Shown in pieces: positions 30,604-40,006 of a stretch of DNA of 64,000 nucleotides. The translations under genes and the position numbers were made by a program. The DNA is from Rebecca billardiae RCC1528 (taxonomy: Eukaryota; Protista; Haptophyta), in contig OZ251222.1 of NCBI GenBank assembly GCA_965240325.2, positions 434,001 through 498,000 of the forward strand, given 5' to 3'. The notes under the pieces were generated by a model that did not search any database, was not told where the DNA came from, and saw only the letters and a program-made list of their open reading frames with translations. Numbering within the stretch: position 1 is the first letter of the stretch; each line of letters begins with the position of its first letter.

Positions 30604-32649
30604 TCAGTTCTTGTTTGCCACGTTCACGAGGCGCCCATCCACCCTAGCGGCAATCGCGTGCTTCTTCAGCACGCCCTCCCGCACCGCCCCCGGCTGCGCA
30701 AGCGCTGCCTCCAGCTGCTCGTGGTGCTTCGCCAGCGCCTCGCGCATGAGCACGGGCAGCAGCGGCACCGCGTCCGAGTCTTTGAGAAGCCTCACCTCTT
30801 TCAAGACGTCATAGCCGTCCTTGCCGCCTGCAAGCCAGAAGGCGCGCGCCGGGCGTGGTGAGTGAGAGGGCAGGCGGGCGGGCGGGCGCGCGACCGCGCG
30901 GCGAGGCCGCGCGAGCGCAGGGCGCGCGCACTTCGCAGGTAGTTCTTTGTGAAGACGGAATACTCGCGGCCGGTGAGCTGCAGCGGCTCCCCTTTGATGC
31001 GCACACTATCCACGAGCACGCGCGAGCCCATGGGCTTCGAGCCGTCGAACTCGAGCGTCACGCCCGCCACGCACGGGAACCTGCCCTCCAGCTTGGGCCA
31101 CTGCGACACGCTGTTCTCGAGCGCCTGAAGCAGCTGCTCGCCCGACAGCGCGAGCACGCACATCTCATCAAGCATGGGCAGCAGCTGGTTGATGTCGCGC
31201 ATCTTGAGCGGGCCCACGGGGAAGACGTCGTCCTGAACGCGCACAGGGAACGGCGCGCGGTGCAGCGGGCGGTCGGGTGAGCGGGGAGCGACTGTGCCAC
31301 ACCTGCGTCTTGCCAGCAGGCCCTGTGCGCGCGCTGGCCGTGCGCGCGTGCGCGTACCGCTCGCAGCGTGCCGCTGTTCATGAAGGCGAGGTCGACGCCC
31401 GGCACGGCAGCGAGCATCGCGTCGGCGACGAAGTTGCTCCCGCTCGTCTCCTGCGTGCGGATATGCGCGAACTTGAAGTCTAGCTCCGTGCCCAGCTCGC
31501 CAATCACCATGTCCATCGTCTTGGCCAGCTCCTTGCTCAGCTCGGCGACGAGCTGCGCGGCGTGCGCGTCCTCGGGGAAGTCGGCGGTGATCTGGACGAC
31601 GTTCCACTCGGCGTCGCAGCGCGGCCCGGGCGTGCCCGGCACGTCGAGCACCACGCGCGTCAGCTCTCGGAAGTCCGTGCCCGACTTGATCAGCGGCACG
31701 GGCCCGACGCGCTTTCTGTACGAGTCGTGGTCGTGGCCGCCGAGGATGAGGTCGAGGGTCGGGCACTCGCGCGCGAGCCGCTCGTCGTTGGGCACGCGGC
31801 AGTGCGTGAGCGCGATGACGAGCTCGCAGCGCTCCTCGCTCCGCAGCGTCGCCTCCAGCTCGCGCGCCGCCTGCACGTAGTCCGTGTACCGCACCTCGCC
31901 CGGCTCCATGCAGTTTAGAGTCGCCAGCCACTCCTCCTCGATCAGGCCCATCAGCCCGATGCGCACGCCCGCGTGCTCGAGCACGAGCGTCTTGCGCGCG
32001 CCCGCGAGCTGCTTGCCCGTCCTCACGTCGACCACGTTGGACAGCAGGTACGGGAAGTTGCTCTCAGCCATGCGCTGCGTGCACGCGTCGAGGCCGTGGT
32101 CAAAGTCATCTGCAGCACGTGGCAGGCGAAGCGGCGGGGCGAGTGCGCGCGCGCCGCAGTCGCGTCAGGCGCGGGGAGGCAGAGGGCCGTCGGGCAAGCC
32201 CCTCGCGAGGGAGGCGGCGGGACGGTCATGCGGCGCGCACGGTTTCCTAGGCACATCGCCTTGATGTTCATCTGGTTGAAGAAGGACACCATGTGCGCGC
32301 CCTTTGTGGACGTCGAGAGCAGCGACGGCGCGAGGAAGTCGCCCGAGAAGAGCACGCACGGGTCCTCGTGCTCGAACGACTTGAGCGCGGTTGTGAAGCG
32401 TGCGACGCCGCCTACTGGCTCGCGCTCGCGCGGGTCGATCTCGTACACGTCGTTGAAGTGCAGGATCACTAGTTTGCGAGCCTCGCTCGAGGCCGCGGGC
32501 GGCGATTGCTGGGGATTGGCCGAACTGTTGGCCTGGCTGAGGCCTGGCGCTGTGTGCGCTTCCCGTGGGGGTGACCTCTCATCATCCGACTTGGCGCCGC
32601 CCTCCGGGTTCAGCCTCCGCGCCGAGGCTCTCCCCGCGCAGCAGAACAT
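30604..32649 (-). CDS. 5'-nucleotidase family metallophosphoesterase, 4 exons
   Basis: ILHFNDVY, SGDF, spliced GNHDFD, IALTH, LGGHDH, NSGTLRAD, EGRFPCVAG, GKDGY. Introns 32110-32240, 31233-31357, 30828-30931. Confidence 0.9.
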
Positions 32650-33000
32650 TGGGCTGCTGGACGCCAAGCACGCGCGCCCTGTTTGCTCCCGGGCAGCCAC
32701 GTCCAAGACCAACGCGTGCAGTTGATGCGCGGAACGACCACGTTCGTCGTTCTTCGTCGGGCGCATTCATTTTTCGTCGGCGGCGGCGGAATCTGTGAGG
32801 AACCCGAATCTTTGGCATTGTCACGCGCGCCCCGGACTCGCGACGAGAGCCAGACTTTCGACCAACCGCAAGGTTGTCCAACCGTCTACCGCAGTCTCAA
32901 GTCGCGGGTGGCGAGCTCGAGCGAGGCGAGCGAGCGACCCCGCGGCCGAGGCCGCTTGGTACCTCCTCGAGGAGGCGCACGGAGTGTCGGAGTCGGCTCG

Positions 33001-34896
33001 ATGTCCATCAGGACCGATGCGCAGCAGCTCGCCTCGGCATGCGCTGCTGCAGATCTCGCACCTGCCGAGCAGCGGCTCGGTGAGCATTCATCCGCGGCCT
33101 GCGTGCTCACTGCCGCTCTGGCAGCGGCTGACGCCATGGGCCAGACAGACGATACGCAGCGCCTGATCAAAGCGAGAGCGCAGGTGGAAGTGGCCCAGGA
33201 ACATGGGATCTCCGGTGTGACTGCGCTCCACCTCGTATGCGGCGCCGGCTACGCGACGTGTGTGGAGCTGCTGCTCTCCGCTGGTGCGGATGTCAACGCC
33301 CCGAGCTCATCTTTGGGCATGCCGCTCCACGCCGCATGCGTGCAAGGACACGAAGCTTGCGCGGAGCTGCTGCTCTCTGCTGGTGCTGATGTTGACGCCC
33401 CGAGCTCATCTTTCGGCATGCCGCTCCACGGCGCGTGCGTGCAAGGACATGCGGCGTGCGCGCAGCTGCTGCTCTCTGCTGGTGCTGGTGTCGACGCCCT
33501 CAACCCAGTTGGGAACACTGCGCTTCACCTTGCATGCGTGTCGGGACACTCGGCGTGCGCGCAGCTGCTGCTCTCTGCTGGTGCTGGTGTCGACGCCCTC
33601 AACCCAGTTGGGAACACTGCGCTTCACCTTGCATGCGTGTCGGGACACTCGGCGTGCGCGGAGCTGCTGCTCTCTGCTGCTGCTAGTATCGACGCCATCG
33701 GCGCACATGGGAACACTGCGCTTCACGCCGCATGCTGGCGCGGACAGGCGGCGTGCGCGCAGCTGCTGCTCTCTGCTGCTGCTAGTATCGACGCCATCGA
33801 CCCAGATGGGAACGCTGCCCTTCACTTTGCATGCGTGTCGGGACACGCGGCGTGCGCACAGCTGCTGCTCTCTGCTGGTGCTAGTGTCGACGCCATCGAG
33901 CCAGGCGGGCTCACGGCGCTTCGCGTCGCATGCTCGTCTGGACATGCGGCGTGTGTGGAGCTGCTGCTCGCGGCGAAGGCTGATGCCACCGCCACCGATA
34001 CCAATGGCGTGCCTTTGCTTCACAGCATGTGCCATGGGGGGCATGCTGCTTGTGCGCAGCTGCTGCTCTCTGCTGGTGCTAGTGTCGACGCCGTCGACCC
34101 AGGCGGGATCACTGCGCTTCACGCCGCATGCTGGCGCGGACAGGCGGCGTGCGCGCAGCTGCTGCTCTCTGCTGGTGCTGGCGTCGACGCCCTCAGCCCA
34201 ACTGGGGCCACTGCGCTTCGCTTCGCATGCATATTCGGACAGGCGGCGTGCGCGAGGCTGCTGCTGGACGCAGGTGCAGATATGACCGCCTTCCCTGCTC
34301 TGGCTGTCGCTGTCTGCGATAGTGGAGGAAGCGCTGAGGCCGTGCTGGGTGGTTCCGTGAGCGTGAGTGACCGGCTGCAGGTGGTACAGCTGCTGTGTGC
34401 GCGTGGTGCCTCGATGGGCTTGCCGACCGAGCACGAGGACAGCCGCGCCTCTGTTGCCGCTGCCGCCCACGAGGAACACGGAGCGAGCGTGCTCACCGAG
34501 TGGCTGGCGCGCGCGGCCGCGTGGACGACTCGGCTGCACCACGTCGAGCTGCTGAACGAGGCAGAGGCAGTGGCAGAGCTGCGCGCGGGCGCCGACGTGC
34601 ACGCCGGCAGCGGGCAGACGGGCGGGCACACGCCGCTCACGATAGCTCTGGCTGCGCTGTCGAGAGAGCCGCAGCACGGCGCCGCAGCGATGGTGGTCGC
34701 CGCGAGCCAGCTGTGGTCGCCGGCGACGCATCGGCTGTTTCCGACGGGTGCGCGTGCGCGTGCTGTGGAGCTGCTGGTGCTGGGATACAGGCTGTCGGCG
34801 GAGGCGGCGTTCGAGGGCGAGGCGATGGCGCTTCTGGATGTGTGGGTCGGGCACGTGGTGCCGCATGCCGTGCACCGTTATTATAGTCTTAGTTAG
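33001..34896 (+). CDS. Ankyrin-repeat protein A (11 repeats plus conserved C-terminal domain)
   Basis: Repeated GxTALHxACxxGHxACAxLLLSAGA units. Intronless. C-terminal WSPATHRLFPTGARARAVELL. Confidence 0.9.
   Translation: MSIRTDAQQLASACAAADLAPAEQRLGEHSSAACVLTAALAAADAMGQTDDTQRLIKARAQVEVAQEHGISGVTALHLVCGAGYATCVELLLSAGADVNAPSSSLGMPLHAACVQGHEACAELLLSAGADVDAPSSSFGMPLHGACVQGHAACAQLLLSAGAGVDALNPVGNTALHLACVSGHSACAQLLLSAGAGVDALNPVGNTALHLACVSGHSACAELLLSAAASIDAIGAHGNTALHAACWRGQAACAQLLLSAAASIDAIDPDGNAALHFACVSGHAACAQLLLSAGASVDAIEPGGLTALRVACSSGHAACVELLLAAKADATATDTNGVPLLHSMCHGGHAACAQLLLSAGASVDAVDPGGITALHAACWRGQAACAQLLLSAGAGVDALSPTGATALRFACIFGQAACARLLLDAGADMTAFPALAVAVCDSGGSAEAVLGGSVSVSDRLQVVQLLCARGASMGLPTEHEDSRASVAAAAHEEHGASVLTEWLARAAAWTTRLHHVELLNEAEAVAELRAGADVHAGSGQTGGHTPLTIALAALSREPQHGAAAMVVAASQLWSPATHRLFPTGARARAVELLVLGYRLSAEAAFEGEAMALLDVWVGHVVPHAVHRYYSLS
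33452..33660 (+). repeat. Perfect 99-bp tandem repeat within the ankyrin array
   Basis: About 2.1 identical copies, period 99. Confidence 0.9.
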
Positions 34897-34979
34897 CGGC
34901 CTTAGTAGCGGGAGCCTACTGCTTTGCACTCCCCCAGTCCGCGACGCCATCAATAATTGTCAGCTAGCTAGAATCATCA

Positions 34980-34981
<2 letters not shown>

Positions 34982-35053
<72 letters not shown>
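34982..35053. repeat. (TA)n microsatellite
   Basis: Directly visible. Confidence 0.95.
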
Positions 35054-35055
<2 letters not shown>

Positions 35056-35142
35056 TGATGAGCTAGCTAGCTGACAATGATGCTGAGCATATCATATCGT
35101 CAAGCAATCGACAATCATTATCAGCATGATTCATCATCGTCG

Positions 35143-36567
35143 TCATTCCTCAACGACAGCACGTTGTCCGTCCACGACGCCAACCTTGGGCGCGCGCGGC
35201 CTCCAGCGCCACACACCAGGCCAACGCTCGGCTCTGCGAGGCGCGCCACCCTCGTCCAGCCTGCGCGCGTTGAAGAGCATCGCGCACAGCGAGCGCCTCC
35301 CCGCGAGGCCGGGCAGGCCGTCGTGCATCACCGCAAAGTTGTCGATGAGCAGCACGTCCCCCGCGCGCCACTCGAAGAGGGACGCGGACGCGGCGAGCGC
35401 GCGGCCCAGCGCCTCGGACTCGCCCAGCCGCAGCGCGGCGCGGAGCGTGCGCGCGCTCCCGTCCCGCCGGACCCCGCCCGTGCGCGCGGCCGCTCTCTCG
35501 CGCGCACGAGCCGATCGAGCGAGCGCCCACCAGCGCGCGGGCCTGCGGAGCGCGTACGGCAGCTGCTCGGCCAGCTGCAGGGCGGCGCGCGCGCCTGGGA
35601 GGCGCCGGACGCACCACCACAGAGCCCTGTGCACGCGCCACCGCGCGGCGCCGGCGTACACGTCGCGCTCGAGCGCGCGGGCGAGCGCGTCCAGACCGTG
35701 CGCGCCGAGCTCGGCGGCGTTGATGAGCAGCGCGCGCGTGCGCCCTGCGGCAGCATCGCTCCTCGCCGGCTCGCGCGGGCCCAGGTCGACCACACTCGGC
35801 TTCGCCAGGCGCACCTCGACCAGGTCGCCGGCCGTCGAGCACGCCGCGACGCCATGCGACGCTGCCTCGGGCCACTCGGCCCGCACAACCGGCGGATGGC
35901 ACGCACGTGCATCGCTCTGCCGCGCGTCGACGAGCGTCTCGGCGCACGCGTCGCGCCGGGCGCACTCACGCGCGAGCTCGGCGCTCGTGCGGAACGTGCG
36001 CGCGTCGAAGCGCTCAGCCTCGAGCTTGAGCTGCAGCGTGCGCGGCAGGAGCGCGAAGGCGCGGCGCGAGTCGAAGAGTGCCGTCTCGCCGCCGAGCAGC
36101 GGGGGATGCGCGCAGAAGAAGGCGACGACCTCGGGCACGTCGGGCGAGTAGTAGTTCTCCGCATGCGCGCACGCCTCAGGCGGCCCAAGGTAGCCGCCCG
36201 TCGGCTTCAGAGTGCTGGTTGCCAAGCAGTACCTGGTGCCGGCGACCCTGTCGCGCCCGGCCTCCGCCAAGAAGTAGCCGTCCATCGGCTCGAGGTGGAG
36301 CGGCGACAGCCCCAGCATGGCCGCCTCGAACGCGCGCGCGTCGCCGAGCTCAAAGCTGCGGAAAAGGACCGCGCCGTGCGCTCGCACGAGGCGGACGACC
36401 TCATCGCCACGCCCACAGAGCGCGTCCTCAAGGCTGGGCGCAGGCCCAGCCCCTGCCATCTCCGATGCCTCGATCACCACGGGGAGGGACGGCACGCGCG
36501 AGCGGGCCGTCGGCCGCTCGTCCGCACGCATCGCGCGCGGCCTGAGCGCCGCCGCCAATCCCGCCAT
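35143..36567 (-). CDS. TauD/TfdA (SyrP-like) Fe(II)/2-oxoglutarate dioxygenase
   Basis: HGAVLFRSF, HAE iron ligands, FFCAHPPLLGGETALFDS, WRAGDVLLIDNFAVMH. Confidence 0.85.
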   Translation of the reverse strand: MAGLAAALRPRAMRADERPTARSRVPSLPVVIEASEMAGAGPAPSLEDALCGRGDEVVRLVRAHGAVLFRSFELGDARAFEAAMLGLSPLHLEPMDGYFLAEAGRDRVAGTRYCLATSTLKPTGGYLGPPEACAHAENYYSPDVPEVVAFFCAHPPLLGGETALFDSRRAFALLPRTLQLKLEAERFDARTFRTSAELARECARRDACAETLVDARQSDARACHPPVVRAEWPEAASHGVAACSTAGDLVEVRLAKPSVVDLGPREPARSDAAAGRTRALLINAAELGAHGLDALARALERDVYAGAARWRVHRALWWCVRRLPGARAALQLAEQLPYALRRPARWWALARSARARERAAARTGGVRRDGSARTLRAALRLGESEALGRALAASASLFEWRAGDVLLIDNFAVMHDGLPGLAGRRSLCAMLFNARRLDEGGAPRRAERWPGVWRWRPRAPKVGVVDGQRAVVEE

Positions 36568-36723
36568 CGCACAAACTGTGAGTCATCGGCAAGTCCGGCC
36601 GCTTGGCCAAGCAGCCGGACACGCGGGCGGATCACGGACGCCGCGCGCCCGACGCGACGCCTCGGTCTAAGACCGCTACCTACCCCGCGCCCGACGTGCA
36701 CGGAGGCTCACGGAGTCGGCTCG

Positions 36724-38526
36724 ATGTCGATCAGGACTAATGCGCAGCAGCTCGCCTCGGCGTGCGCTGCTGCAGAGCTCGTACCTGCCGAGCAGCGGCT
36801 CGTTGAGCATTCACCCGCGGCCTGCGTGCTCGCTGCCGCTCTGGCTGCGGCTGACGCCATGGGCCAAACAGATGATACGCAGCGCCTGATCGAAGTGCGA
36901 GAGCGGGTGGAAATGTCCGAGAAGGCTGGGAGGTCTGGTGTGACTGCGCTCCACGACGTATGCTACGACGGCTATGCGACGTGTGTGCAGCTGCTGCTCT
37001 CCGCTGGTGCTGATGTCGAAGCCCTCAGCCCAGATGGGAACACTGCGCTTCATGTCGCATGCTCAAATGGACACCCTGCGTGCGCTGAGCTGCTGCTCGC
37101 GGCGAGAGCAGATGTGAACGCCACCACAAACCTGGGCTTGACTTCGCTGCAAATTGCGGCTGGCGATGGCCATGCGGAGTGCGCACGGCTGCTGCTCTCT
37201 GCTGGTGCTGACGTCGAGGCCCTCGGCCCAATGGAGATAACTGCGCTTACCCTGGCATGCTCAAGAGGACACTCGGTGTGCGCTGAGCTGCTGCTCTCCG
37301 CGGGTGCTGATGTCGGCGCCATCGAACCAAAGGAGAGCACTGCGCTTTTCCTCGCATGCGCGGCCGGACATGTGGCGTGCACCCAGCTGCTGCTCTCTGC
37401 TGGTGCTGATGCCGGCGCCCTCGACCGAGCTGGGAACCCAGTTCTTCACGTCGCATGCCTGTCGGGACATGCGGCGTGCGCGGAGCTGCTGCTCTCTGCT
37501 GGTGCTGGCGTCGACGCCCTCAGCCCGACTGGGGCCACTGCGCTTCACGTCGCATGCACGGCGGGACACGCTGCGTGTGCGGAGCTGCTGCTCGCGGCTA
37601 ATGCAAATGTCAACGCCACCGAAGGCCAGGTGGGCATGACTGCGCTTCACGTCGTGTGCGAGCTGGGGCATGCGGCTTGTGCACAGCTGCTGATCTCTGC
37701 TGGTGCGGATCTGGACAGCAGGTGCATCCACGACGTTGGGGTGGCTGCGCTTCACATCGCATGCGGTAAGGGCCACGTGGATTGTGTGGAGCTGCTGATC
37801 ACAGCACGTGCTACTGTGGAGGACGCCTTGCAACACGACCAGGAGGGAGCCTGTACCCCGTTGCGGTGGGCGTGTGGACGCGGACAGGCGGCGTGCGCGA
37901 GGCTGCTGCTGGACGCAGGTGCAGATATGACTGCCTTCCCTGCTCTGGCTGTCGCTGTCTCCGATAGTGGAGAATTCGCTGAGGCTTTGTTGGGTGGTTC
38001 CGTGAGCGTGAGTGACCGGCTGCAGGTGGTACAGCTGCTGTGTGCGCGTGGCGCCTCGATGGGTTTGCCGACCGAGCACGAGGACAGCCGCGCCTCTGTT
38101 GCCGCTGCCGCCCACGAGGAACACGGAGCGAGCGTGCTCACCGAGTGGCTGGCGCGCGCGGCCGCGTGGACGACTCGGCTGCACCACGTCGAGCTGCTGA
38201 GCGAGGCAGAGGCAGTGGAAGAGCTGCGCGCAGGCGCCGACGTGCACGCCGGCAGCGGGCAGCCGGGCGGGCACACGCCGCTCACGATAGCTCTGGCTGC
38301 GCTGTCGAGAGAGCCGCAGCACGGCGCCGCAGCAATGGTGGTCGCCGCGAGCCAGCTGTGGTCGCCGGCGACGCATCGGCTGTTTCCGACGGGTGCGCGT
38401 GCGCGTGCTGTGGAGCTGCTGGTGCTGGGATACAGGCTGTCGGCGGAGGCGGCGTTTGAGGGCGAGGCGATGGCGCTTCGGGATGTGTGGGTCGAGCACG
38501 TGGTGCCGCATGCCGTGCACCGTTAG
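36724..38526 (+). CDS. Ankyrin-repeat protein B (10 repeats), paralogue of 33001-34896
   Basis: Same N-terminus (MSIRT.AQQLASACAAA) and near-identical C-terminal ~210 aa; different central repeats. Confidence 0.9.
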   Translation: MSIRTNAQQLASACAAAELVPAEQRLVEHSPAACVLAAALAAADAMGQTDDTQRLIEVRERVEMSEKAGRSGVTALHDVCYDGYATCVQLLLSAGADVEALSPDGNTALHVACSNGHPACAELLLAARADVNATTNLGLTSLQIAAGDGHAECARLLLSAGADVEALGPMEITALTLACSRGHSVCAELLLSAGADVGAIEPKESTALFLACAAGHVACTQLLLSAGADAGALDRAGNPVLHVACLSGHAACAELLLSAGAGVDALSPTGATALHVACTAGHAACAELLLAANANVNATEGQVGMTALHVVCELGHAACAQLLISAGADLDSRCIHDVGVAALHIACGKGHVDCVELLITARATVEDALQHDQEGACTPLRWACGRGQAACARLLLDAGADMTAFPALAVAVSDSGEFAEALLGGSVSVSDRLQVVQLLCARGASMGLPTEHEDSRASVAAAAHEEHGASVLTEWLARAAAWTTRLHHVELLSEAEAVEELRAGADVHAGSGQPGGHTPLTIALAALSREPQHGAAAMVVAASQLWSPATHRLFPTGARARAVELLVLGYRLSAEAAFEGEAMALRDVWVEHVVPHAVHR

Positions 38527-38597: not shown

Positions 38598-38600
<3 letters not shown>

Positions 38601-38678
<78 letters not shown>
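38601..38678. repeat. (TA)n microsatellite
   Basis: Directly visible. Confidence 0.95.
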
Positions 38679-38679
<1 letters not shown>

Positions 38680-40006
38680 GCATACTATATGTCTAGCCAC
38701 GGTCCTCGTGAACGCCGGCGCCAAACGCTGGCCGGCAGAAGGTGGGCACGCTGCCTGGCATGTTGATGCCGAGGCGGCTGCGTGTGTTCCTACTCAGTGG
38801 GATTTACGTGTCCTCATGCCTTGGCGAGCGGCAGCAGATGCGGTGGGCATGCCGCTCGCCGTCGACGAGACACGGTGCGTGAGTGATCCCGCGCCGTGAC
38901 GTCCGCTGACGGAAGGCTGAGCGCCTGCGGACTCGTCGACTGAACCTCCACCGCCGCCCGCGTGCAGCACTGCTGGGGACCTTCCCTGAAAACCCAACCG
39001 TGTTGGGACGCAGGGGGGGTCACATGAGCCCTAAGTGCAGCGCTGCAATACCGGGCGGTCGAACGGCGGGCGTTGTGGTCCCGCCGCCCAAGCACCAGAC
39101 CAACGGGCCCTGGGTGGGCGGGTTGCCTAACGATGTTGGTCGGTGCACGCGACGCGCCACCCGCGTGCGAGCCGCAGCCACCGGCGACGCGGAGCGCGTG
39201 GTCGATGGCCATCGAGCCTTCGCTCGCGCTGTGGCTGGAACAAGCCGAGATGCCGTCGCCGCCCCGAAACGAAGATCTTCTTGTCCGGGACGGAACAACC
39301 CGGACGGGCTGTTTGTCCGGCAGCAGCTCGTTGAGGCCATGGTCCGGTAGAAGGCGATGGAGCTGATGAGCAGCGCTGGCGCGCGGCGTCCTTGTCGTCC
39401 CCTTAGACAATCAGTTTTTGTACCAATAACCCCACATATATGCATCAGAATATCATCACGTACTTCACAGAAGTACGACCGCCGGGTTTAATAGTTACGA
39501 CTGTAAGTACTAAGTGTACCTATACTGCGTCATCTACTGACTCACGGAGGGATCGGCTCCAGTCGGGAGTAGTTACCAGGTTACCCCCGAGGACGGACGA
39601 TTACGATGTCGACGCGCGATATATATCTGATGACGAACGCGACGCCGACTGCAGGCTGGCAGGCGGCAGCAGACTGGCTGCTGGCGGCGTCGTCCTGATA
39701 TGCGCGCAATCTGCTGACATCAAGCTGTAGGCCTAGACGGTAGTCACAGAGAGAGACTCCCAGACAGAGAGACGTGTAATGGGACTACTGGCAGCATCAC
39801 TCGTCCGCGCGGTCACACCTGATGATGATGATACGCCAGTTCATTAAAATGTAGTATTATATAATACGCTATAGCGACCTGCATTCTCAGAGTACTACGT
39901 ATATATATACTAGTTATAGCTTATTTACGTCAATACTACTAGTTACTTACTAGTAAGTCCAGTCTGACTAGTCTCTGCTGCTGATACTGCTACTGCGAAG
40001 TGTGAT

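Follow-up and report, generated by a model that had tools for sequence, protein, structure and literature searches.

In the haptophyte alga Rebecca billardiae RCC1528, two neighbouring genes encode proteins with conserved ends and unlike ankyrin-repeat arrays, and we consider the pair to be, probably, paralogues from a large, lineage-specific haptophyte family of soluble ankyrin-repeat adaptors in which the arrays have been rebuilt and the tail has been converted. Three ordinary DNA processes account for the constant-variable-constant look of the two genes, namely an older duplication (N-terminal dS ~0.17), unequal crossover or gene conversion that turned over the 99-bp units within the arrays, and a recent conversion tract of ~645 bp that made the 3' ends alike again. 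The genes lie in a window of 64,000 nt (assembly GCA_965240325.2, contig OZ251222.1, positions 434,001-498,000 of the forward strand), to which all positions below refer. The genome of the alga measures 72 Mb, with 68% GC.

Architecture of the two proteins

Both proteins score above the curated cut-offs of the profiles that define an ankyrin repeat protein (PF00023 / PF12796), with 11 stretches of Ank in gene 1 (E 1.7e-66; Ank_2, E 2.5e-69) and 10 in gene 2 (E 1.7e-61; Ank_2, E 2.9e-63), and at E<=1 a Pfam scan of both full proteins returned only ankyrin families and noise. Aligned by BLASTP, they are 69% identical overall, conserved at the ends and unlike in the arrays, which together with the Pfam result confirms what had been proposed from the sequence alone, i.e., a paralogue pair with a common N-terminus, a near-identical 3' region and differing arrays of 11 and 10 repeats (Table 1). 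Homology between the genes begins ~25 bp upstream of the ATG, and the first 312 bp of the coding sequence are 86.5% identical. The N-terminal 71 aa matched no Pfam family and were present in only two copies, those of genes 1 and 2, in a search of the alga's own genome. Both 1.8-1.9-kb frames run without a stop or frameshift; since long ORFs survive by chance in a genome of 68% GC, their intactness is weak evidence of function.

Each protein forms a single long ankyrin solenoid, in which a degenerate N-terminal region, 10-11 canonical repeats, cryptic repeats and a helical cap follow one another. The last part of this solenoid had been taken for an unknown C-terminal effector domain, a candidate that we rejected: the region consists of cryptic ankyrin repeats and a short helical cap (WSPxTHxLFP...RxRAVELL) that has no Pfam or fold match. 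In a profile search of PDB sequences, positions 7-55 of the family profile matched DARPins (E 4e-8) and ankyrin repeats were the only structures returned, and when the last 263 aa were modelled with AF2 (pLDDT 91), the result was a solenoid of helix pairs throughout.

Table 1 Features of the gene pair, in window positions
Feature	Position	Strand	Description
Gene 1	33001..34896	+	Intact ORF, 631 aa: 71-aa N-terminal region, 11 ankyrin repeats, conserved C-terminal domain
N-terminal region, gene 1	33001..33213	+	71 aa, 78% aa identity to gene 2; dS 0.17, dN/dS 0.75
Array, gene 1	33214..34302	+	Eleven exact 99-bp (33-aa) ankyrin units, 99-bp spacing throughout
Tandem duplication, gene 1	33452..33660	+	Perfect 99-bp; exact 110-bp run at offset 99 from 33452
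Repeated block, gene 1	33714..33778 = 34110-34174	+	65/65 identical, no further extension, four units apart
Inter-gene patch	34157..34219 vs 37484-37546 (gene 2)	+	63 bp, 62/63 identical
3' block, gene 1	34236..34880	+	645 bp, 97.2% identical to 37881-38525, gap-free, 18 mismatches (blastn)
Conserved C-terminal domain, gene 1	34303..34893	+	Cryptic ankyrin repeats, then ~55-aa helical cap
Gene 2	36724..38526	+	Intact ORF, 600 aa: architecture as gene 1, 10 ankyrin repeats
Array, gene 2	36937..37947	+	Ten units, 33-37 aa, less homogeneous
3' block, gene 2	37881..38525	+	Partner of gene 1 conversion tract

Recombination in the arrays and at the 3' end

The difference between the two arrays is mostly a matter of unit turnover. 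The mean pairwise amino acid identity of the units is 59% in gene 1 and 50% in gene 2, and the best identity at a lag of 33 residues over 100 aa reaches 82% and 61%, respectively. Five units of gene 1 (r4, r5, r6, r7 and r10) share 83-95% identity as copies of a single unit that is similar to r6 of gene 2, with r6 and r10 (94% identical) having their first halves in common, while r2/r3 constitute another young unit pair. The traces of module shuffling that the sequence-only reading had pointed out were all verified at the positions given in Table 1: the perfect 99-bp duplication base by base, the identical block four units apart in full, and the block shared between the genes with a single mismatch. 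The register of the duplication at 33452-33660 is shifted relative to the protein repeat, which is a sign that unequal crossover or slippage occurred here recently. The inter-gene patch spans the r10/r11 junction in gene 1 and the r6/r7 junction in gene 2, i.e., different array positions, and its identity far exceeds the 70% mean between the two arrays. Judged from these patterns, recombination does reshape the arrays, through in-array amplification of units, duplications in a shifted register and the 63-bp exchange between genes. Repeats of such a regular, internally similar type were found in these two genes only, plus weakly in a single gene of contig 11, whereas the repeats of most paralogues are ordinary and diverged.

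At the 3' end, a near-identical region of ~640 bp had been claimed (34237-34876 vs 37881-38523); the near-identity is real and the coordinates were slightly off, the true block being 645 bp long. Its upstream junction is sharp, as identity jumps from ~45% to 100% at 34236, inside the last canonical repeat. The dS between gene 1 and gene 2 amounts to 0.166 in the N-terminus, 0.377 in the array and 0.047 in the 3' block (Fisher p 0.027 for the N-terminus vs the C-terminus and 9e-12 for the ankyrin part, hereafter ANK, vs the C-terminus), a contrast that overstates the age difference because the array dS is inflated by the alignment of non-orthologous units. Given a dS of 0.047 vs 0.17-0.38 elsewhere, and given how sharp the junction is, we attribute the near-identity of this block to recent gene conversion and not to constraint alone.

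Variation and selection on the ankyrin surface

Variability among the units peaks at DARPin positions 1, 2, 3, 5, 10, 13, 14 and 33 (entropy of 2.5-3.3 bits vs ~1 elsewhere), and the proposal that variation falls at target-contact positions of a fixed scaffold thus stands, the variable sites being the canonical binding-surface sites. As in DARPins, the gene 1 units lie near a single consensus and vary at the library-randomised positions (2, 3, 5, 13, 14 and 33), to which positions 1 and 10 are added. Unlike DARPins, the window genes are natural, and since the same positions vary in essentially all ankyrin repeats, the pattern alone is no indicator of a diversifying receptor.

The framework residues carry a signature of purifying selection, if a weak one. 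Across 21 units, seven of them (L8, G15, C19, L22, L23, A26 and A28) never change, and pN at invariant framework positions is 0-0.07 vs a pS of ~0.47. At positions 8, 15, 19, 26 and 28, pS is ~0.47 or higher, which shows that the fold is under purifying selection; the codons of L22 and L23 never vary (pS 0), so these two are uninformative on selection. The framework pN/pS is 0.56 (p 3e-6) when five independent paralogue pairs are pooled, and 0.65 between gene 1 and gene 2. The surface residues, with a similarly weak signature, seem to evolve at the neutral rate or a little faster, in which case binding specificity would be free to drift or would be in the course of diversification. The surface-site ratio to which the sequence-only reading had attached weight is indeed ~1.5 in the pooled data (pN/pS 1.48 at the a-priori DARPin sites of the same five pairs, Fisher p 0.044), but the p value rises to 0.19 once the window pair is left out. 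Four of the five pairs have a surface pN/pS of 1.4-1.6, overall estimates are ~1.2-1.5, and young units give 1.47, with a framework dN/dS of 0.83 among the youngest. Being only marginally above 1, the ratio is suggestive of positive selection at the binding surface and does not prove it.

The high dN/dS of the pair (0.65-0.88 overall; 0.88 in the array and 0.75 in the N-terminus) and its low GC3 would be compatible with low expression or relaxed constraint as well. On a rival reading, the two genes duplicated recently, are weakly constrained and may be in decay, with array and surface variation as neutral by-products of an unstable tandem repeat that mean nothing for function. The GC3 of 0.65-0.70, well under that of the neighbouring gene and the paralogues, agrees with this, as do the dN/dS values including that of the framework of the youngest units, and chance long ORFs do occur at this GC content, e.g., a 1,149-aa ORF largely antisense to a TauD-like gene. 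We nevertheless regard such decay as unlikely: framework positions 8, 15, 19, 26 and 28 are invariant despite their pS, the framework pN/pS between the genes is 0.65, and both frames are intact.

A large family with a conserved C-terminus

The C-terminal domain was used to collect the family genome-wide, as the sequence-only reading had suggested, and gave 53 matches in the alga's own 72-Mb genome, which makes this a large family rather than one of only two copies. At E<=1e-3, the domain also matched 1,446 protein clusters, mostly marine and all unnamed, in a library of 1.84 billion proteins; all ten clusters inspected (10/10) combine ANK with this C-terminus. We define the ANK + WSP-cap family by a ~130-aa domain (W..RLHHVELL ... 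PWSPxTHxLFP..RxRAVELL ... VLPHAV.R) that ends an ankyrin array, and both window genes belong to it, aligning over their full length with 26 paralogues with 14 columns invariant. The family is tandemly clustered in the genome. Its nearest named relatives are those of Pavlovales sp. CCMP2436, and our search for a name or paper for the family returned none. Neither gene had an allele or orthologue in the protein collection, where the best hit reached 58%, or in metagenome contigs (36-39%), and viral contigs yielded no relative. In all close paralogue pairs tested, the C-terminus is slower to diverge than the ANK part; over nine pairs, ANK dN/dS is 0.64-0.93 and ANK dS 1.2-10x the C-terminal dS.

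A MYND zinc finger follows the cap in ~13 of the 30 paralogues examined. The finger (PF01753) is matched in two halves, with E values of 8e-5 in L021, 3e-4 in L014, 0.025 in L018 and 0.11 in L012, and among these four only L021 passes the Pfam MYND cut-off. The window genes stop 0-5 codons past the cap, and tblastn showed no MYND remnant downstream of the pair. MYND is a peptide-binding zinc finger, so its presence in paralogues fits an adaptor role. As predicted from the fold, the window proteins would most likely be protein-protein adaptors; their arrays would use the concave face to bind partners that vary, and a common partner would be the docking site of the constant C-terminal module. 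Ankyrin-and-MYND proteins are known from animals (ANKMY1, ANKMY2/daf-25), and the ~13 of 30 paralogues resemble them in domain layout by joining N-terminal ankyrin repeats to a C-terminal MYND. The window pair, by contrast, is without MYND, ANKMY proteins are not known to have a WSPxTHxLFP cap that separates array from finger, and there are dozens of fast-evolving copies here vs one conserved orthologue.

The sequence-only reading had proposed recombination-diversified sensors analogous to fungal NLR repeat arrays. The genes would then be dedicated, diversifying receptors of non-self (e.g., virus), driven by recombination and positive selection on the ankyrin surfaces, with the C-terminus giving the signal. 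The shuffling of arrays is real, the family has many members and lies in tandem clusters, its ANK part always outpaces the C-terminus in divergence, and the surface pN/pS in four of the five pairs (pooled p 0.044) is of the kind expected. However, we judge such receptors rather improbable, as nothing demonstrates an immune or effector role, no NOD, TIR, death-like or enzymatic module was found by Pfam, the tail amounts to a simple helical cap, the repeats in most paralogues are of an ordinary, diverged kind, no relative appeared in viral contigs, and pN/pS is not robustly above 1 (p 0.19 with the window pair left out).

In fungi, NLR (STAND) proteins have been described whose ANK, TPR or WD repeats show high internal conservation, such as HNWD/NWD of Podospora, with such conservation defined as >=85% identity over >=100 aa (Dyrka et al. 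2014, PMC4986451). The analogy extends to repeat dynamics only: unequal crossover and gene conversion rebuild the solenoid arrays, both inside single paralogues and from one paralogue to another, variation lies on the concave face, the non-repeat part is constant, and the families are tandemly clustered. Unlike the fungal proteins, the algal pair has no NACHT or NB-ARC and no N-terminal effector, its constant module is C-terminal and not N-terminal, its internal identity (mean 50-59%, best 82%) is below 85%, and positive selection is not robust.

The C-terminal tail

The structure search on the C-terminal domain matched its ankyrin part, while the tail matched no fold. Among 28 members, the tail had no Pfam match, and no F-box, PRANC or SOCS even at E<=10. 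The fold search with the isolated tail returned nothing at E<=0.001, its best match (Z 6.1) being to unrelated helical proteins at the noise level of helical bundles, and no F-box or SOCS structure was among the top 50 matches. It is therefore very improbable that the tail represents a diverged form of F-box, PRANC or SOCS-box-like module and the family a set of cullin-RING ligase substrate receptors whose array selects substrates, the more so as the PDB profile search gave ankyrin repeats only and MYND follows the tail in many paralogues, unlike the ASB or F-box layout, even though the module sits C-terminal to the array as in ASB and poxviral ANK/F-box proteins, the best Foldseek match of the 263-aa model was ASB9 with Elongin B/C (E 5e-4; TM only 0.33, ankyrin-driven) and a language-model search lists viral ANK-PRANC clusters (score 0.79, the noise level). 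What the pair has in common with ASB and poxviral/giant-virus ANK/PRANC proteins is a short, conserved helical module at the C-terminus, placed behind an ankyrin array, but the pair bears no SOCS, F-box or PRANC signature in Pfam, the PDB profile search or the tail fold search.

Wider meaning

The evolution of ankyrin arrays by unit shuffling is already well known, and the pair itself is unsurprising. What goes beyond is an unnamed family, composed of array, cryptic repeats and WSPxTHxLFP cap and often MYND, with ~50 loci here and >1,400 clusters in marine metagenomes, as well as a family-wide split between a recognition part that diverges fast and a tail homogenised by conversion. Haptophytes dominate ecologically and come under heavy viral attack. 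It is a long shot that they possess NLR-independent variable receptors in the form of large solenoid families (e.g., ANK/WSP-cap, with MYND or not) whose binding faces would be diversified by repeat shuffling together with positive selection, and whose C-terminal docking module conversion would keep identical from paralogue to paralogue, such that all receptors engage a single common partner downstream. If surface selection were to hold true in population data, haptophytes would exemplify repeat-based recognition repertoires without NLRs; if the signal were to fail, the pair would be a clean case of conversion and unequal crossover mimicking a designed constant-variable-constant receptor.

Codon usage

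The pair had been said to use more T/A-ending codons than neighbouring genes, and this holds, since its GC3 is 0.69-0.70 over the whole genes (0.65-0.66 in the arrays), whereas the neighbouring TauD-like gene has a value of 0.88 and the C-terminal regions of 24 paralogues have 0.79-1.0. Codon bias is stronger in the C-terminus (GC3 0.84 vs 0.65) and could lower its dS somewhat without conversion. In 19 of 22 family members, C-terminal GC3 exceeds ANK GC3, which is the expectation if conversion is frequent in the C-terminus.

An ankyrin gene pair from a large haptophyte family

The two neighbouring ankyrin genes of the window, gene 1 and gene 2, are probably fast-evolving paralogues that encode putative ankyrin adaptors of an undescribed haptophyte family, and their constant–variable–constant appearance would stem from turnover of repeat units within the arrays combined with recent gene conversion at the 3′ end. 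The two proteins share 69% amino-acid identity, and Pfam assigned them ankyrin families only, in 11 stretches of gene 1 and 10 of gene 2; the closest named protein matches belong to Pavlovales sp. CCMP2436. DNA homology between the paralogues starts ~25 bp 5′ of the ATG and ends just past the stop codon, and thus the duplicated unit is essentially the coding sequence. Over its first 312 bp this is 86.5% identical between the genes, and the N-terminus was found in this pair alone when the R. billardiae assembly (72 Mb, 41 contigs) was searched.

Features of the window in and around the ankyrin gene pair
Feature	Position	Strand	Remarks
5′-nucleotidase-like ORFs	31058-32766	-	upstream of gene 1; probably split over frames by introns
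Gene 1	33001-34896	+	uninterrupted ORF, 631 aa
99-bp duplication	33452-33660		exact 110-bp run at offset 99, starting at 33452
Block repeated within gene 1	33714-33778; 34110-34174		identical
Block common to both genes	34157-34219; 37484-37546		62 of 63 bases alike
(TA)n microsatellite after gene 1	34961-35075		~36 units
Spurious ORF	35077-38526	+	1,149 aa
TauD/TfdA-family dioxygenase-like gene	35143-36567	-	PF02668, E 1e-18; between gene 1 and gene 2
Gene 2	36724-38526	+	uninterrupted ORF, 600 aa
(TA)n microsatellite after gene 2	38600-38680		~36 units

The supposition that the pair belongs to a larger family with a constant C-terminus was confirmed by a genome-wide collection with the last 219 aa, which gave 53 matches, mostly within ORFs of 400–800 aa that also bear ankyrin repeats, and which rules out that only two copies exist. 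About 12 of the 53 lie on a single contig (C13), several as adjacent pairs (e.g., 1474560/1476996, 2473209/2475752, and 2563822/2567437). Two matches on another contig (C23, 222108 and 237698), 15.6 kb apart, have the same score, suggesting that the segment was duplicated very recently.

Beyond this genome, a profile of the conserved C-terminal domain (A2, the last 130 positions of an alignment of 28 paralogues) retrieved 1,446 clusters from a library of 1.84 billion proteins at E ≤ 1e-3, of which 793 also passed E ≤ 1e-10. Among the best 150 of the 1,446 clusters nearly all cover essentially the whole profile, with most matches at or near the C-terminus, and all ten clusters that were scanned combine ankyrin repeats with the C-terminal domain. 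The clusters stem from Logan, ENA, JGI, and Tara assemblies, where their sole names are “hypothetical” or “ankyrin repeat protein”, and the best public match reaches 58% identity in the C-terminus. The hits of a pattern scan of metagenomes were two distant paralogues (L040 and L041), the contig L039, which does not match gene 1, and the contig L038, which belongs to a human-gut metagenome assembly. The literature on haptophyte ankyrin/MYND proteins and Pavlovales ankyrins yielded nothing on a family of this ankyrin-plus-WSP-cap layout. A viral origin or link found no support, with no relative among IMG/VR viral contigs.

Unit turnover in the arrays and probable conversion of the 3′ region

The arrays were cut into 21 units, eleven of exactly 33 aa in gene 1 (g1 r1–r11) and ten of 33–37 aa in gene 2 (g2 r1–r10). 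All three sets of repeated blocks that had been taken as module shuffling were recovered at the DNA level (see table). A unit-by-unit identity matrix left a few recognisable orthologous units, namely g1 r1/g2 r1 (89%), g1 r8/g2 r7 (82%), g1 r9/g2 r8 (76%), and g1 r11/g2 r10. Within gene 1, r4, r5, r6, r7, and r10 are 83–95% identical among themselves and 82–87% identical to g2 r6, while r2 and r3, 89% identical, are a second young pair. Half-units also recur in shifted registers in gene 1 (r5 and r6 have equal tails, as do r3 and r4, and r6 and r10 have equal heads), which shows repeated unequal crossover or conversion. Together with the young unit copies, this indicates that the arrays differ mainly by unit turnover and not by point hypermutation. 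The regular repeat type is confined to the window pair and, weakly, one gene on contig 11 of the same genome; DNA identity at a lag of 99 reaches 0.68 for gene 1, 0.62 for the paralogue L003, and 0.48 for gene 2, with 0.27–0.48 in the other paralogues.

The near-identical 3′ block of the pair (645 bp, 97.2% identity, gap-free) is best explained as a recent gene-conversion tract of about that length, given its low synonymous divergence and abrupt junction. Between gene 1 and gene 2, dS is 0.166 in the N-terminus (dN/dS 0.75), 0.377 in the array, where it is inflated by non-orthologous alignment (dN/dS 0.88), and 0.047 in the C-terminal 214 codons (dN/dS 0.47); synonymous counts differ between N- and C-terminus (p 0.027) and between array and C-terminus (p 9e-12). 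Because an eight-fold drop in dS in the C-terminus is beyond the reach of protein-level selection, conversion is favoured. The junction itself lies at 34236, within the last canonical repeat, where same-register identity leaps from ~45% to 100%. Across nine close paralogue pairs, the ankyrin part exceeds the C-terminus in dS by a factor of 1.2 to 10, and in 19 of 22 members GC3 is higher in the C-terminus than in the ankyrin part, the pattern expected of GC-biased conversion.

Cryptic ankyrin repeats and a helical cap

The sequence-only reading had proposed an unknown effector domain at the C-terminus, a proposal that we abandoned, since both structural modelling and a profile search of the PDB show cryptic ankyrin repeats there. 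When the last 263 aa were modelled by AlphaFold2 from the paralogue alignment (pLDDT 91, pTM 0.84), they formed an unbroken stack of helix pairs, with which Foldseek retrieved ankyrin proteins only. Profile A2 matched DARPins among PDB sequences at positions 7–55 (E 4e-8), and for this reason the stretch W..RLHHVELL...GAD....PL.LA is a cryptic ankyrin repeat; the preceding RLQVVQLLC..GA resembles a second helix from a further such repeat.

The non-ankyrin remainder comprises only the final 55–68 residues (PWSPxTHxLFP..RxRAVELL.LG..L......W..HVLPHAV.R). For these, Pfam gave no match in any of the 28 members at E ≤ 10 and Foldseek none with a model of the isolated 68-aa tail (pLDDT 75), while VIA-align of the tail reached Z ≤ 6.1 to unrelated helical bundles, the noise level of this tool for helical models. 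We read the modelled tail as a conserved helical cap with a putative docking surface, and not as an enzyme or pore.

In ~13 of 30 paralogues read, the reading frame stays open beyond the cap and enters the first half of a MYND zinc finger, which lies just past the ...HAVER motif; these paralogues include L004–L009, L012, L014, and L018–L021. L012, L014, L018, and L021 also have the second half in frame, and zf-MYND was matched in L021 (E 8e-5, profile positions 1–24) and L014 (E 3e-4, 24–39), both as unspliced read-through ORFs with exons unjoined. The finger is probably interrupted by a candidate intron whose position, directly after ...KAVVYC, is constant; in four MYND paralogues the sequence between the halves is stop-free in frame. 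The window pair ends at the cap, with no MYND remnant found downstream, and lacks the ANK–MYND layout of these paralogues.

Selection on the repeats and alternative readings

In the 21 units, the framework positions L8, G15, C19, A26, and A28 have a pN of 0–0.05 with a pS of ~0.47 or more, whereas L22 and L23 are invariant but uninformative, their codons being likewise invariant (pS 0). Purifying selection acts on the fold, or did so until recently. As the sequence-only reading had noticed, variation falls at DARPin-type positions, with high per-position entropy solely at 1, 2, 3, 5, 10, 13, 14, and 33. The six positions randomised in designed ankyrin libraries (2, 3, 5, 13, 14, and 33) have a pN/pS of 1.23 over all units, vs. 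0.66 elsewhere; in the young units the values are 1.47 (surface) and 0.83 (framework). Ankyrin positions were also mapped by an HMM from the 21 units onto five non-overlapping paralogue pairs, and Nei–Gojobori counts on these independent pairs, using same-register codons only, were pooled. Here the a-priori DARPin sites gave a pN/pS of 1.48 (Fisher p 0.044; four pairs at 1.41–1.56) and the framework 0.56 (p 3e-6), and without the window pair the surface stood at 1.57 (p 0.19). The counts fit neutral-to-positive evolution of the putative binding face, with diversifying selection not proven. The same surface positions vary in any ankyrin family, and surface variability alone is thus not diagnostic.

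Relaxed or decaying duplicates are an unlikely reading of the pair, one that the high dN/dS and low GC3 of the pair would suit and that the conserved framework speaks against. Dedicated diversifying sensors, as first proposed, are about as unlikely. Of that proposal, recombination-driven remodelling of the arrays and a large family with a constant tail were borne out by the exact blocks, the unit matrix, and the 53 matches; the effector domain fell away, and positive selection is unestablished. Its analogy with fungal NLRs extends to repeat dynamics, since NLR repeat domains combine concerted evolution, repeat shuffling, and concave-face variation (PMC4986451), and ends there: Pfam found no NACHT or NB-ARC domain in either protein, and internal identity is at best 82% over 100 aa vs. 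a threshold of 85% for fungal NLRs (PMC4986451). A role as E3 substrate receptors is very improbable, as the layout of an array with a short C-terminal helical module is common to ASB, F-box, and PRANC receptors, yet Pfam, the PDB profile search, and the fold searches gave neither sequence nor fold evidence of membership. Nor did Pfam (28 members, E ≤ 10), Foldseek, or VIA-align support the tail as an F-box, SOCS, or PRANC module, and language-model atlas scores on it were ~0.8, the noise level.

Sequence surroundings of the pair

Codon usage in the pair is more T/A-ending than in its neighbours, as had been stated, with a GC3 of 0.70 in gene 1, 0.69 in gene 2, and 0.65–0.66 in the arrays, compared with 0.88 in the TauD-like neighbour and 0.79–1.0 in the C-terminal regions of 24 paralogues. 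This neighbour is unrelated to the ankyrin genes and lies outside the duplication; it starts 156 bp away from the gene 2 ATG, and the TauD-like gene and gene 2 may share a divergent promoter. The ORFs upstream of gene 1, read by eye, presumably resemble the N-terminal metallophosphatase part of a 5′-nucleotidase. The GC content of the window is ~68%, and wrong-frame ORFs of 300–500 aa are numerous across the region. The ORF of 1,149 aa was dismissed as an artefact of this GC-richness: its first 549 codons are not ankyrin gene and run largely antisense to the TauD-like gene, and the true gene start inside it is that of gene 2. A (TA)n microsatellite follows ~90 bp past the stop codon of both genes; the sequence between stop codon and microsatellite is not conserved between them. 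The microsatellite after gene 1 is flanked by a ~22-bp inverted repeat that gives a long potential hairpin.
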